A stretch of DNA of 64,000 nucleotides from sequence record MT133560.1. One strand, written 5' to 3'. The translations under genes were made by a program, and so were the position numbers. The notes below the pieces were generated by a model that ran no database searches, was not told the DNA's origin, and was given only the letters and a program-made list of their open reading frames with translations. Shown piece by piece: positions 3,853 through 59,776 of this stretch. Each line of letters starts with the position of its first letter. The stretch's first letter is position 1.

Positions 3853-4401
3853 ATGATTAAAATGGGTATTGATGTTTTCCCTGTAGTTACCAAACGTTCC
3901 ACACGTTCTTCAGATGGTGCACGTGTACTTAAATTCATTGACATGCATACATGCGAGGCTCTTAACTTTAGCCGTTGCTATTATCTTTGGGATTGGTTAA
4001 CCGATAATAATGAGTATACCAACCGATTCTGTCGACCGACTCTTAAAGGCTGTGGATTTGGTACACTCGTCAGTGATGACTCGCATCCAGTATGGAACAA
4101 CTTTGAAGGTCGCCTTTCACAAATTGTCAATTCCAAACAGGACAATCTAACACCGTACGCCTATTATAGTGAAGATGGTTGGTACCCACTTACAATGATC
4201 TTCAATATGGAAGACCTCTGGAACTTCGATTATGATCAGAAGCCAACGATGTTCGATCAAGATGTTAATGGTGAAGTCATTTCGGAAAAAACCTATCGCC
4301 AGCTATTTTTGAGCAATAGTGTGGATGATGGTTATTTCAAGTTCCTGGAAGAAACTAAAAAGATGGAGTGTGTTCACTTCATCGCCCGATTCTGGGGATG
4401 A
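3853..4401 (+). CDS. hypothetical protein
   Basis: Co-oriented, tightly packed ORF. Confidence 0.8.
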   Translation: MIKMGIDVFPVVTKRSTRSSDGARVLKFIDMHTCEALNFSRCYYLWDWLTDNNEYTNRFCRPTLKGCGFGTLVSDDSHPVWNNFEGRLSQIVNSKQDNLTPYAYYSEDGWYPLTMIFNMEDLWNFDYDQKPTMFDQDVNGEVISEKTYRQLFLSNSVDDGYFKFLEETKKMECVHFIARFWG

Positions 4402-24151: not shown

Positions 24152-24808
24152 ATGCTAATGAATGAAATTATCGATATTCTAGAAGGAGGGAAAGAGAATA
24201 TTCTCTTAACTAACCATCTAGGTAATGGCAAATATTCCAATGCGGGTAATGCAATGGCTGCATCATATGCCATTGCGGCACATACTGCTGTTGGTCAATT
24301 GCGAGATGGTTCAGGAAAACCTTACTGGCATCATTTATTACAAGTAGCTGAGATGGCGCAATTATTCGACCTATCTCACGCTGCTTATAAAGCAGCATGG
24401 TTACATGATGTAATTGAGGATACTGCTGTAACTGCTTCTGATCTAACTAAACTATTCTCAATCCCTGTTGTTAATTTAGTAACTGAACTAACAAATGTAA
24501 CTTACAAAGGTAATCGTAAAACTAGGATTAGTTTACAACATGAAAGACTTTCTCGCATTTCATGGAGTGGTCAATCTCTTAAGTTACTAGATTCCATTTC
24601 AAACATGTGGTCGATTGTTAATGATAAGCCTGATTTTGCTGAACTGTATCTGACTGAGAAAGCTCAACTAATCAGTAAGTTAAATAATTGTCACCCCGCT
24701 ATTAAAGATCTGGCTATATCTGTTCTCTATGGCAGGTGTACTATGGTTGGTGGGGATGCACTAAAAGAATATAATAAACTATTTTCTGATAATGAAATTG
24801 TATGTTAA
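24152..24808 (+). CDS. HD-domain hydrolase, RelA/SpoT-hydrolase (Mesh1/SAH)-like
   Basis: HTAVGQLRDGSGKPYWHH, AAWLHDVIEDT, V.LV.ELT, LKLLDSISN. Confidence 0.85.
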   Translation: MLMNEIIDILEGGKENILLTNHLGNGKYSNAGNAMAASYAIAAHTAVGQLRDGSGKPYWHHLLQVAEMAQLFDLSHAAYKAAWLHDVIEDTAVTASDLTKLFSIPVVNLVTELTNVTYKGNRKTRISLQHERLSRISWSGQSLKLLDSISNMWSIVNDKPDFAELYLTEKAQLISKLNNCHPAIKDLAISVLYGRCTMVGGDALKEYNKLFSDNEIVC

Positions 24809-56278: not shown

Positions 56279-56526
56279 TTAAAAATATAAATAGAATGGT
56301 TATCTCTTTCGGTTATCTTTAGAGTATTCTCATTTCGAATAACTTCAAGAGACTTGTATTTATGTTCCAGAATATCCAGATGAGAAATACACTGTTCCCT
56401 ATTTTCAAATAGGATATTACTTTCATTAGTCGAAATGAAACCAAATAATCCAACTTTGATAGATAATACCAACATTATTACTGTATTCATGTTTTCCTCA
56501 ATGAGACAGTATAAAACCTCCCCCAA
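56269..56526 (-). CDS. small exported protein with F-x5-C...C pattern (start probably 56493)
   Basis: MNTVIMLVLSIKVGLFGF...LFENREQC...FKCL. Confidence 0.65.
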   Translation of the reverse strand: MGEVLYCLIEENMNTVIMLVLSIKVGLFGFISTNESNILFENREQCISHLDILEHKYKSLEVIRNENTLKITERDNHSIYIFKCL

Positions 56527-56534
56527 GTGGGAGG
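56517..56534 (-). terminator. hairpin after tRNA-CAT, probable terminator
   Basis: CCTCCC-CCAAGT-GGGAGG (plus-strand reading). Confidence 0.7.
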
Positions 56535-57169: not shown

Positions 57170-57622
57170 TCAACGTGGCCATTGTAAAGAAGTTATCTTA
57201 TTACCATTAATGTAGACATCGGTCACTTCGCACCAATCATTAATTCTGTGTTCAATAATTGGAACATCATTTCGGCCAGCCACTCCAATCATATTCCATT
57301 TAACATAAATATTCATTAGATCAATTGTTAATTTCTCTTTTATGAGTTTAGGAGAAATTAATTTAATATTATTAATGTTAAAGAAGTAATTATTAACTTC
57401 TTCTAAATATTCATTAGTATTAGTAGTACTAACTTTGCCTTCATGTTCAAGTGAGGATGGTTTATTCTGATTTACAATATTGCTCACTAGACTTCTTAAA
57501 ACGGCACTTGCCCTACCAGCTTCGCGTCTTTTATACTTATCATAGTCTTTTACATTAGCTGCAATTTTATCAAATTCTTTTTGGGCATAGATTAGCCCTG
57601 GTAAAAGTTCATTTTTGATCAT
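57170..57622 (-). CDS. hypothetical protein
   Basis: Co-oriented; TATGTA at 57666-61. Confidence 0.8.
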   Translation of the reverse strand: MIKNELLPGLIYAQKEFDKIAANVKDYDKYKRREAGRASAVLRSLVSNIVNQNKPSSLEHEGKVSTTNTNEYLEEVNNYFFNINNIKLISPKLIKEKLTIDLMNIYVKWNMIGVAGRNDVPIIEHRINDWCEVTDVYINGNKITSLQWPR

Positions 57623-57677
57623 TTTATAATTACTCTATGTTGTTTATACATATTTTAATATACATACGTAAAAACAA

Positions 57678-57820
57678 AATATAAAGCCTCCCCGAAGGGA
57701 GGCGATATATCGTCATTAATGCCCAGCAAAGAGTTTTACTCTCTGGGAGCCAGTTGGAAGGGGGACTGGCTCCGATCTATTATGACTAATGTAGAAACAA
57801 GGGGGAGGGATTATTTCTAC
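57678..57820 (-). ncRNA. candidate structured late small RNA (about 140 nt) with C/U-rich loops
   Basis: TATGTAG 57823-17; hairpin GTAGAAA/TTTCTAC; junction with GGAGCCAGT/ACTGGCTCC and CCCAG/CTGGG; terminator GCCTCCC-TTCG-GGGAGGC 57703-57686 + TTTAT. Confidence 0.65.
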
Positions 57821-57835
57821 ATAATATTAGATACA

Positions 57836-59776
57836 TTACTGGTAGTTTTCATTACCCATTGCTAACCTACCTTTTATAGACCGATCTACCCATTTTGCGG
57901 CGGCCTCCATGATATCAATGAATGAGTGGTATTGCCGCATTTTATTAACTTCCATCACATCATCATCAATCCCAGGGCCAAAGCATGCGAATAACAAATC
58001 ATTCCAATCATAGTAATCGATACCAGCTATTGGACTAGGGTTATCCAACATATCGTAGATTAGTCCTTCCAGTGGATCTGGTAAATCAGGGAACTTGAAG
58101 CTAAGAGTTATCTGACGTTCCAATGCCGATATAATTAAGTTCATGGCCTTAGCTGCTTCTTCTTCAGTAAGAGCTTTGAGTTTACTATCAGTAGATGGAT
58201 ATTTCGCGACCACGGTGCGAGGTGAATTATAGGTACCCTTACCTGTAATAGTACCGGCTGGCCATTTAACACTAGTCTTGAATCCAGCACGTGCCTTGTC
58301 TACGATAGCCTTTGCTTCTTTGTATACGTTAGCGTCTAGGTTATGTGCATTCTTAATGAGTAGATCCAATGCAGGTTTAGTCTTCTGCCTGTAAGACTCC
58401 ATTTCGCGATTAGACTTTTCTTCGAGTTTGAAGAATGGTTCTACTGCACGAATGGCATCCTCGATACTGACTTTACCATTAATACTCAGTACGTTAGCTA
58501 TACCATTACTATTGATATCGCCAGTAACGAATACCTGCTTATTAAGCCATTGTGGATTGCCAAATGTAGATTCTAGTTGTTCCAGAAATCCTCTTGCACT
58601 GGACGATGAACGCCAGATACGTTTCTGATCACCTCGATTAGAAATGCCAAGAACTTTTTTGATTGAATCGATAAGACCTTCATTTGAGACTTGTATAAAA
58701 CCGGGAGTATTAATGATGGACTTCTCTACATACCCGCCACGAATAACCCGATTTATAAAACCATTAAGACCACTACCAGTTTCGGCCATATCTTTCATGA
58801 TTTCTATATTCGTTTCACCGGCACTTTGGGCATTGTATAAATAATAAGAACCATCTTTGAATTTCAGTATAATCCAGTCATCCCCAGTTAGATATGAATC
58901 AATATTACTATCATTCATACTTTGATATTTAATGAATTCTGGATTAGTACTTAATACTTCTTCAATGAATTCTTCTAATGCCGCAGAATTATTAATAGCA
59001 TCAACCGGTAGAATTTCACCATCAATGGGTTCAGTAGTTGGACCAGTAACAATGGCAGGTAACGGATCCTCCTCTACAATAACAGTTTCTTCCACTGGTA
59101 GAGCACCGCAAGATAAATCAATTAGTTTATTAAAACTACTAATGATCTCACCAAGTGCTACAAGAACTGCTGGCTGTTCAACTTGTTCAACTTTAGCAAT
59201 ACCAGTTTCTGTAAATTCTTCAGTAATTCGGTTATAGACTTCCACTAATTGATTAGTAAGCTCTGCTACTTTTGGCAGAGTCTGCTTAGACAGAGGTTCA
59301 ACTACAGTTGTATCTGCTTCAACAAAAATAGAGTCATCTTCTTCTAAACGGCTAGTATTAGCTGAGCCAGCTGTGAAGTTATAAGGCATATCTTGAATTA
59401 CTTCATTAATTTCAGATGCCTCCATATCTTCATTTAGACGACCACTATAAGTACGCATCATACCTTCTGCTTCTTTAATAGTGGAATGCGCTAAGCGTCC
59501 CCAATCACCACGCATAATACCGCGCTCGGTAAGACCGCGTGCAGCTGAACCAAGATCAATAGGTTCTTCAATAAATGATTGTTCTTCAACCCACTCCTCA
59601 TTACTGTAACATTCTTTTAGAATGGTTTTAAATTTAGTACTAAAGGGTTGTAGAATCTTTTTATCTACTTGTTCAACATTTGTTTTAAAGTGTTCTAGAC
59701 TTGGTGTAGCTTTTGAAGATACTTTTTCAGTACCGCTATATAGCGTACGGTTTAGGAAGTTTAGCATTTTATTCAT
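57836..59776 (-). CDS. gp303-like internal head protein, probably proteolytically processed, with KTSC-like domain
   Basis: Position before glycine zipper/nrdB/nrdA; S/A/G-x-E sites (AALE, VSNE-GLIDSIKK); IDSYLTGDDWIILKFKDGSYYLY...MKDMAETGSGLNGFIN. Confidence 0.75.
   Translation of the reverse strand: MNKMLNFLNRTLYSGTEKVSSKATPSLEHFKTNVEQVDKKILQPFSTKFKTILKECYSNEEWVEEQSFIEEPIDLGSAARGLTERGIMRGDWGRLAHSTIKEAEGMMRTYSGRLNEDMEASEINEVIQDMPYNFTAGSANTSRLEEDDSIFVEADTTVVEPLSKQTLPKVAELTNQLVEVYNRITEEFTETGIAKVEQVEQPAVLVALGEIISSFNKLIDLSCGALPVEETVIVEEDPLPAIVTGPTTEPIDGEILPVDAINNSAALEEFIEEVLSTNPEFIKYQSMNDSNIDSYLTGDDWIILKFKDGSYYLYNAQSAGETNIEIMKDMAETGSGLNGFINRVIRGGYVEKSIINTPGFIQVSNEGLIDSIKKVLGISNRGDQKRIWRSSSSARGFLEQLESTFGNPQWLNKQVFVTGDINSNGIANVLSINGKVSIEDAIRAVEPFFKLEEKSNREMESYRQKTKPALDLLIKNAHNLDANVYKEAKAIVDKARAGFKTSVKWPAGTITGKGTYNSPRTVVAKYPSTDSKLKALTEEEAAKAMNLIISALERQITLSFKFPDLPDPLEGLIYDMLDNPSPIAGIDYYDWNDLLFACFGPGIDDDVMEVNKMRQYHSFIDIMEAAAKWVDRSIKGRLAMGNENYQ

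Follow-up and report, generated by a model that had tools for sequence, protein, structure and literature searches.

In enterobacteria, type I 3' untranslated region (3'UTR) small RNAs (sRNAs) such as DapZ and MicL are made from a promoter of their own, located close to where a coding gene ends, and share a terminator with the mRNA. C-rich loops, in turn, are a recognized signature of sRNAs that occlude ribosome-binding sites (RBSs), such as RNAIII, RsaE, and cuckoo/NfeR1 (PMC4615179; PMC10746234). For the giant phage phiKZ, an ONT-cappable-seq study of infected PAO1 cells yielded 17 noncoding RNA (ncRNA) candidates in all, none of which was given a function (Putzeys et al. 2024, microLife, PMC10914365; bioRxiv 10.1101/2023.10.13.562163); one of them, transcription unit TU237, lies upstream of PHIKZ302 and carries the label "5'UTR-derived ncRNA candidate" (Tables S3 to S7 and Fig. 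6B therein). The small RNA considered here, located on the minus strand at positions 57678 to 57820 of a 64,000-nucleotide (nt) stretch of record MT133560.1 (the window, to which all positions refer unless stated otherwise), is that same transcript: strand, genome, and both ends match. Its fold, promoter, and two loop sequences are conserved in three genera of Pseudomonas aeruginosa giant phages. The 2024 study presented TU237 without a structure, a loop analysis, or a target and described conservation within genera only; what is added here is the fold, the cross-genus homologues, the covariation, the conserved loops, and a negative result, partial in scope, on phage RBSs as targets. In the literature after that study, we found no paper giving TU237 a function.

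Cappable-seq placed a primary 5' end of this RNA, the transcription start site (TSS) of promoter P144, 15 to 16 nt past the PHIKZ303 stop codon. The published ends (TSS, 274148(-); transcription termination site [TTS], 274007; length, 141 nt; P144 classed as late and terminator T131 as intrinsic; PMC10914365) correspond to window positions 57819 and 57678 (near this locus, the record coordinate equals the window coordinate plus 216329). The original prediction, made from the letters alone, had called a minus-strand RNA of about 140 nt with a multibranch fold, starting at a G at 57820, lying 3' of the head-protein gene, and ending in a UUCG terminator. Much of this was borne out. Strand, length, and fold agree with ONT-cappable-seq and the northern blot, and with covariation in three genera; the stop codon of PHIKZ303 lies 15 nt ahead; the proposed lower bound of 57678 is the exact published TTS; and the UUCG hairpin matches T131. 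The published TSS is 1 nt off the predicted +1, and the same 1-nt offset is seen at the second late promoter, P143. The phiKZ non-virion RNA polymerase, the consensus of which is TATG with G as +1 (PMC4666361), initiates the small RNA at a TATG late promoter just past the PHIKZ303 stop codon, and the mapped TSS is consistent with the G of this TATG as the start site (PMC4666361). A northern blot (probe JVO-21409) confirmed the 141-nt RNA and a longer read-through form, the short RNA was so abundant that the read display needed down-sampling, and the authors' open reading frame (ORF) screen agrees that TU237 is noncoding (PMC10914365). In summary, the small RNA is late, abundant, independently initiated, terminator bounded, and noncoding.

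One detail of the published record deserves mention. In Supplementary Table S7 (consulted as machine-converted PDF text), the sequence printed for the phiKZ entry 274148-274007(-) is that of the genomic plus strand, i.e., the reverse complement of the RNA, and the RNAfold energy given in that entry (-48.7) would then belong to the wrong strand. This printing of the plus strand may be the reason that the C-rich loops went undiscussed.

The 141-nt RNA folds as a 5'-terminal hairpin, a three-way junction, and a terminator (Table 1). Its minimum free energy (MFE) is -51.6 kcal/mol, versus -31.0 +/- 3.7 kcal/mol in dinucleotide shuffles (z = -5.56), and none of 200 shuffles was as good. The GTAGAAA/TTTCTAC hairpin, the closing stem, the 9-bp hairpin, and the C-rich loops of the original prediction are all present in this fold; three further pairs extend the 7-bp GTAGAAA/TTTCTAC stem to 10 bp, and three extra pairs extend the closing stem beyond a bulged A, the latter in the centroid structure only. 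A third hairpin had been proposed as well and is indeed present, at 57745 to 57727, but its suggested CCCAG pairing loses to CAGAGAGU/ACUCUUUG by 4.4 kcal/mol, and the CCCAG/CUGGG outer stem was rejected as 4.4 to 7.7 kcal/mol worse than the MFE model. For both C-rich loops, the probability of being unpaired is predicted to be 1.0. Loop 1 contains UCCC, and the UCCC of hairpin 2 begins with the last base of the stem. Runs of five cytosines are scarce, with 12 on both strands of the 64 kb (35% GC), two of which are in the two loops, and other G-free C-rich loops on stems of at least 7 bp were few in the phiKZ genome pieces scanned, all of them weak and A/U stemmed. The only other phiKZ hairpin noticed with CCUCC in its loop (CUUUCCCUCCUUCU), at about 24174 to 24201 on the minus strand, has a weak 7-bp A/U stem (ATATTCT/AGAATAT).

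Outside Phikzvirus, blastn from the phiKZ sequence returned terminator-like fragments only, and homologues were found by synteny, through folding of the region 3' of gp303-like genes. Such homologues are present at this place in PhiPA3 (Miltoncavirus) and in the Pawinskivirus phages PA1C, HHBS36_1, PS119XW, phiLBG22, and HPP-Temi. In PhiPA3 (L032:4120-4290), TATG is followed by hairpin 1 (GUAGAAG...CUAC, with loop CCUACUCCU), the closing stem, hairpin 2 (GGAGCCACU and AGUGGCUUC around loop AACCCUUCCA), hairpin 3, one extra hairpin, and a CCCCUCC-UUCG-GGAGGGG terminator. The Pawinskivirus homologue has the same start, a hairpin 1 with loop UCACUCCU, a closing stem of 9 to 10 bp, a hairpin 2 with loop AACCCUUCCA, and hairpin 3, followed by a largely single-stranded stretch of about 48 nt with CCCCUCCUUU and then by the terminator, with tRNA-Leu and tRNA-Pro immediately 3' of it.

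Covariation was assessed in an alignment of 9 distinct sequences from the three genera, with counts taken over the three hairpins. Standard pairs are formed in 94.9% of the cells, versus 39 to 48% when the partners are slid by 1 to 3 columns; double changes affect 5 pairs (15 cells), and the covariation score of 0.295, versus 0.19 in shuffles, was reached by 0 of 500 shuffles. Two pairs of hairpin 1 are doubly changed across genera. Hairpin 2 is paired in 81 of 81 cells and likewise has two doubly changed pairs (one with G-C, C-G, and A-U; the other with U-A and C-G), whereas 6 of its 9 pairs never vary over the three genera; hairpin 3 is paired in 91.7% of its cells, with one pair changing among A-U, G-C, and U-A. 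Because the Pawinskivirus closing stem covaries, with two compensatory pairs, conservation extends to the multibranch architecture. All three genera share an unchanged promoter block, TAAT..TATGTAGA; the core of loop 2, CCCUUCCA, is invariant in all 9 sequences, and loop 1 keeps a CUCC core in every genus. The loops on which the original prediction depended are conserved, and the primary 5' end lies within 1 nt of 57820.

The alignment within Phikzvirus comprised eight sequence variants. The RNA is 93 to 100% identical among them; its stems show one compensatory change (A-U to G-C, in hairpin 1), three wobble-compatible changes, and one terminal pair lost in one genome, and its loops are constant except for one C-to-U change. 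Identity is only 72 to 100% in the 57-nt spacer that separates T131 from the PHIKZ302 start, and PHIKZ302 itself falls to 72% in phage T2P. Upstream, the last 600 nt of PHIKZ303 are represented by an unrelated allele in most Phikzvirus genomes (about 35% DNA identity), with a mosaic boundary about 10 nt upstream of the TSS, where homology resumes. In the corresponding proteins (window 57830 to 58435 compared with L002 to L008), the N-terminal ~506 amino acids (aa) of gp303 have about 77% identity and the last ~140 aa are unrelated.

This mosaicism bears on the possibility that the element is a structured 3' end of the PHIKZ304-303 mRNA, which would protect that mRNA from 3' exonucleases, with P144 an incidental TATG start and the short RNA devoid of a role. 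T131 does end this mRNA (TU238, from P145 to T131, 2898 nt; Putzeys et al. 2024, PMC10914365), such that the whole element doubles as the gp303 mRNA 3'UTR; moreover, the element is always found 3' of a gp303-like gene, and TATG motifs are common in the AT-rich phiKZ genome (PMC4666361). We nevertheless regard this possibility as quite unlikely: neither the promoter block nor the paired 5' end at +1 varies across genera, even where the C-terminal coding sequence of gp303 has been replaced, the short RNA is abundant and visible on northern blots, and the conservation of the loops exceeds the needs of a protective stem-loop. Support for an independent unit comes from the promoter block, which persists across genera while the coding sequence ahead of it has been exchanged, and from the position of the RNA: in PhiPA3 and Pawinskivirus it stays beside the gp303-like gene, but the gp302-like gene of PhiPA3 is found about 2 kb further along, and no such gene is annotated 3' of the RNA in the Pawinskivirus loci that were fetched.

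On the downstream side, the small RNA sits in a 213-nt intergenic gap (57623 to 57835) between PHIKZ303 and PHIKZ302, all on the minus strand, and PHIKZ302 is followed by five tRNA genes and a few small genes. The majority of transcripts from P144 end at T131, and a minority continue into PHIKZ302 and the tRNA genes; these read-through units, TU233 to TU236, reach up to 2408 nt (PMC10914365). One could therefore view the element as a leader or attenuator acting in cis, its structure setting how much transcription from P144 and from the upstream PHIKZ304-303 unit passes T131 into PHIKZ302 and the tRNA-Leu/Pro cluster and the 141-nt RNA being the aborted product. The "5'UTR-derived" label of the 2024 paper corresponds to such a leader, the terminated form (TU237) and the read-through forms share one 5' end, and a tRNA-Leu-containing cluster follows the element in each of the three genera, immediately so in Pawinskivirus. 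However, no antiterminator pairing is visible: the terminator is retained in the MFE as well as in the centroid structure, and structures with the terminator dominate the ensemble. The exposed elements, being C rich like the 5' arm of the terminator, could by sequence-based reasoning compete only for its 3' arm, which emerges last. Furthermore, no riboswitch, T-box, or leader family was found at the Rfam threshold; the downstream gene is a different one from genus to genus, in contrast to the RNA and the upstream gene, which stay the same; and gp302 and the tRNA genes have their own late promoter beyond the terminator, P143, which drives them independently of the small RNA (Putzeys et al. 2024, PMC10914365). 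In view of these points, we consider regulation of read-through an unlikely role. A T-box-like antiterminator reading was rejected, with no competing helix and no conserved UGG-type bulge.

Several further observations concern the terminators and flanks of these loci. Intrinsic terminators of phiKZ are stereotyped (G/C)CCUCCC-UUCG-GGGAGGG(C) hairpins, often bidirectional, with examples in the window at 56520 to 56534 and 57686 to 57703 and in NC_004629 at about 3738, 120606, 152942, 222630, 238102, and 264498, among others; the same type occurs in PhiPA3, Pawinskivirus, Phabio, and one Xanthomonas giant phage. The small RNA's loop 1 looks like the 5' arm of such a terminator without its partner. 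In Pawinskivirus and PhiPA3, the U-tract of the terminator reads CUUUAUGUUG (L033:4260-4270 and L032:4278-4288), so that the terminator overlaps with a late-promoter-like TATG motif lying directly ahead of the downstream genes; in Pawinskivirus, tRNA-Leu is immediately downstream of this motif. At the same position, phiKZ has UUUAUAUUUU and uses P143 further downstream. Finally, in PA1C (L033:4062-4084 and 4190-4205; same in L034), folding with upstream context pairs the last part of the gp303-like gene, AACUUACCAGCUG, with CAGUUGGUAAGUU in the RNA region, a long-range helix that the 3'UTR isoform of the mRNA can form but the primary small RNA cannot.

As to function, our leading explanation, favored only tentatively, is a late stand-alone sRNA whose two loops pair with Shine-Dalgarno (SD)-like mRNA stretches and block translation initiation. 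With its own promoter and a terminator shared with PHIKZ304-303, it would be an sRNA gene that sits within the 3' end of the gp303 unit and not chiefly a leader of gp302. The permanently exposed, G-free, pyrimidine-rich loops (with the CUCC core and CCCUUCCA) would act as seed regions, and their pairing with purine-rich, SD-like stretches would block translation initiation, preferably at G-rich sites in mRNAs of the GC-rich host or on a few phage mRNAs rather than on phage genes generally. Such targets are the more likely ones because phiKZ RBSs are short and G poor; in the start regions of 318 phiKZ ORFs, SD sequences are mostly AGGA, GAGG, or GGA, with GGAGG in 4 and GGGG in 6. We keep the anti-SD mechanism as the leading one because pairing with purine-rich RBSs is the most usual role of exposed C/U-rich loops in bacterial sRNAs and because loop 1 has an anti-SD core (CCUCC in phiKZ, CUCCU elsewhere), and we infer that the two loops are the functional surfaces.

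A number of results weigh against this explanation. Pairing with phage RBSs turned out to be weak and nonspecific: for either loop, the median duplex energy with phiKZ translation-initiation regions is about -5 kcal/mol, and -8 kcal/mol or better is reached in 10 to 12% of start regions versus 7 to 9% of internal control windows. The complement of the loop 2 core (GGAAGG/G) is essentially absent upstream of phage start codons, and loop 2 is therefore not a generic anti-SD sequence. Loop 1 finds its best complements genome-wide in the double-stranded, G-rich arms of the phage's CCCUCCC/GGGAGGG terminators. Host mRNA is strongly depleted by the late stage, while the small RNA has a late promoter. 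Furthermore, the 6 invariant pairs among the 9 of hairpin 2 fit protein recognition as well as base pairing, the evidence base consists of 9 distinct sequences from three related clades, and the small RNA has no known target. A motif found at a few phiKZ start regions, AGGGAUUA, was dropped, as it matches the phiKZ-specific flank of loop 1 and not the conserved core. The more specific proposition that we are dealing with a family of trans-acting late sRNAs, whose CUCC and CCCUUCCA loops would mimic the anti-SD tail and silence G-rich RBSs of the host or of selected phage genes while sparing the short, A-rich phage sites, seems doubtful to us.

The same features of hairpin 2 invite a different speculation, namely, that the RNA binds protein or serves as a decoy, with hairpin 2 and the CUCC single strands titrating or recruiting a phage or host protein, possibly one that recognizes the 3' tail of 16S rRNA. 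Not only 6 of the 9 pairs of hairpin 2 but also eight of its loop bases are fixed over the three genera, while hairpins 1 and 3 drift, and a loop 2 without phage mRNA targets fits protein binding. Pawinskivirus RNAs carry single-stranded GAUCCCCUCCUUU, and loop 1 of phiKZ reads AAUCCCUCCCCCUU; the Pawinskivirus sequence is close to the 3' end of 16S rRNA, which we take to be GAUCACCUCCUUA. Anti-SD tails have a documented CCUCC core (PMC6288834). On the other hand, there is no known candidate protein, a 2021 Grad-seq study listed two phage ncRNA candidates only, both other than this small RNA, and the mimicry of the 16S tail is short and may follow from pyrimidine richness alone. A protein-binding role is, in our estimation, improbable to about the same degree as regulation of read-through, and the pairing of the loops with mRNA remains the preferred explanation.

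Reading the locus on its other strand, i.e., as a GGA-rich, RsmA-type sponge or as a 48-codon ORF at 57719 to 57865, has next to nothing to recommend it. The plus strand does fold well (z = -4.05), and several records annotate a hypothetical protein under 57719 to 57865. The mapped TSS and TTS, however, are on the minus strand, TU237 is listed as a minus-strand unit, and promoter and terminator both have minus-strand polarity, just as the original prediction had held in preferring this strand; its RsmA-like plus-strand reading has no transcript. A sponge of the RsmY/Z type, binding Rsm (CsrA), was rejected accordingly, as the GGA-rich loops exist on the plus strand only and the transcript is on the minus strand. 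As for the plus-strand ORF, it spans the mosaic boundary, and its C terminus and length shift from 48 aa in phiKZ to 40 aa in PA7. Lying antisense to the small RNA, it is apparently the hypothetical protein of several GenBank records, probably a misannotation. On neither strand did we find a conserved ORF in the RNA region; small ORFs are frameshifted by U-tract indels or made by single substitutions. In phage PA7 (L004:1521-1619 (+)), for example, the compensatory A-to-G change in hairpin 1 also makes an AUG (AAAUGAUCCC), which opens a 32-codon ORF through the RNA in PA7-type variants only; this ORF is absent from phiKZ and is therefore not a conserved coding feature.

To delimit the distribution of the element, a covariance model was built from the three-genus alignment. 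It gave no further copy in those pieces of the phiKZ genome that were searched (next best hit, 13.8 bits; E = 1.3) and no match in 201phi2-1, Viktualia, and Phabio at the loci of their gp303 homologues, where the intergenic regions fold well but contain different elements. Loop-pattern scans of IMG/VR and JGI metagenomes yielded only PA7 and chance C-rich matches, a hairpin 2 motif scan of IMG/VR yielded PhiPA3 and PA7 only, and a search of Rfam at both thresholds gave no family at threshold for the RNA and only tRNAs in its neighborhood. Every carrier found is a phage of P. aeruginosa, a restriction that could reflect either phylogeny or a host-directed function. The window itself is DNA of Pseudomonas phage phiKZ, with positions 57400 to 58100 being 100% identical to several phiKZ isolates and 99.9% identical to NC_004629. 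The offset between the window and NC_004629 varies elsewhere (the shift amounts to about 295 nt for PHIKZ281 and to 825 nt for a 29-mer near PHIKZ208/209), and the isolate of the window therefore differs from NC_004629 by indels.

Phages like phiKZ build a nucleus-like shell, bring their own RNA polymerases, and are under development for therapy, and their posttranscriptional control has been little explored. With a defined fold, cross-genus covariation, two exposed loops with invariant cores, and a fixed address by a virion-protein gene and a tRNA cluster, this RNA is among the best-supported candidates for a first mechanistic sRNA study in lytic giant phages, and its conserved loops give the exact bases for mutation. 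If the loops act on RBSs, these phages would bias translation with an anti-SD mimic, and the trans-acting reading, if true, would provide the first functionally defined riboregulator of this kind in nucleus-forming giant phages; if the loops bind protein, the result would be a new ribonucleoprotein of the infection cycle.

Table 1. Features of the small-RNA locus, with positions in the window
Feature	Position	Strand	Remarks
PHIKZ303, virion structural (head) protein gene	57836-59776	-	Stop codon 15 nt before RNA start
Late promoter P144, TAAT..TATG	57820-57830	-	G of TATG (57820) is the likely +1; TSS 274148(-) in Putzeys et al. Table S3
Small RNA, phiKZ TU237, 141 nt, P144 to T131	57678-57820	-	Published TSS, TTS, length, and northern blot; fold z = -5.56
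Hairpin 1, 10-bp stem, 5' end base-paired	57791-57820	-	10-nt loop UCCCUCCCCC at 57801-57810
Three-way junction enclosing hairpins 2 and 3	57712-57786	-	Closing stem GUCAU/AUGAC, 57786-57782 with 57716-57712
Hairpin 2, 9-bp stem GGAGCCAGU/ACUGGCUCC	57746-57773	-	Loop CCCCCUUCCA at 57755-57764
Hairpin 3, 8 bp, CAGAGAGU-AAA-ACUCUUUG	57727-57745	-	MFE pairing
Intrinsic terminator T131, GCCUCCC-UUCG-GGGAGGC and U-tract	57676-57703	-	Stem 57703-57686; TTS 274007 in Table S4
Second late promoter P143, TATG	57649-57652	-	3' of T131; TSS 273977(-), Wicke et al. 2021; TU232
PHIKZ302, downstream gene, reached by read-through transcripts TU233-236	57170-57622	-

Among known RNA systems, one comparable case is sRNA005 of 201phi2-1, together with the phiKZ sRNA upstream of gp182 (PMC11512511): these too belong to nucleus-forming giant phages, arise by premature termination, extend across genera, and have a fixed place by a structural gene. 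However, sRNA005 has another locus and another sequence and occurs in 201phi2-1, EL, and PhiPA3 (PMC11512511); the small RNA described here is missing next to the gp303 homologues of 201phi2-1, Viktualia, and Phabio. In staphylococcal RNAs of the RNAIII/RsaE type, UCCC apical loops on stable hairpins start the pairing with RBSs (PMC4615179); the small RNA shares this form but not descent, since there is no sequence or Rfam relationship and host, size, and architecture all differ. The cuckoo/alpha-r14 RNAs (RF02344; e.g., NfeR1 of Sinorhizobium), for which RBS occlusion is the proposed mechanism (PMC4615179; PMC10746234), resemble it in having several hairpins, variable covarying stems, and C/U-rich, anti-SD-like loops. 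Indeed, ar14 is the best Rfam match and aligns exactly both loops, with 19.7 bits (E = 0.057) over a 181-nt stretch, well below the gathering threshold of 58.8. The likeness to RNAIII and cuckoo RNAs in the original prediction hence holds for form and is architectural only. Members of the cuckoo family have two to four adjacent hairpins with an identical loop motif, CCUCCUCCC (PMC4615179), whereas the loops of the small RNA, UCCCUCCCCC and CCCCCUUCCA, differ from each other and from that ultraconserved motif, its third hairpin has the loop AAA, and its hairpins 2 and 3 stand in a three-way junction instead of side by side. Cuckoo RNAs, furthermore, are encoded in alphaproteobacterial chromosomes, and the small RNA is found in gammaproteobacterial phages. 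By its gene organization, finally, it resembles the type I 3'UTR sRNAs, with its own TSS 15 nt past the PHIKZ303 stop codon and with T131 shared with the PHIKZ304-303 mRNA; unlike theirs, its promoter is read by a phage-encoded, noncanonical RNA polymerase. The layout, then, fits a nested sRNA gene of the type I 3'UTR kind as much as it fits a leader.

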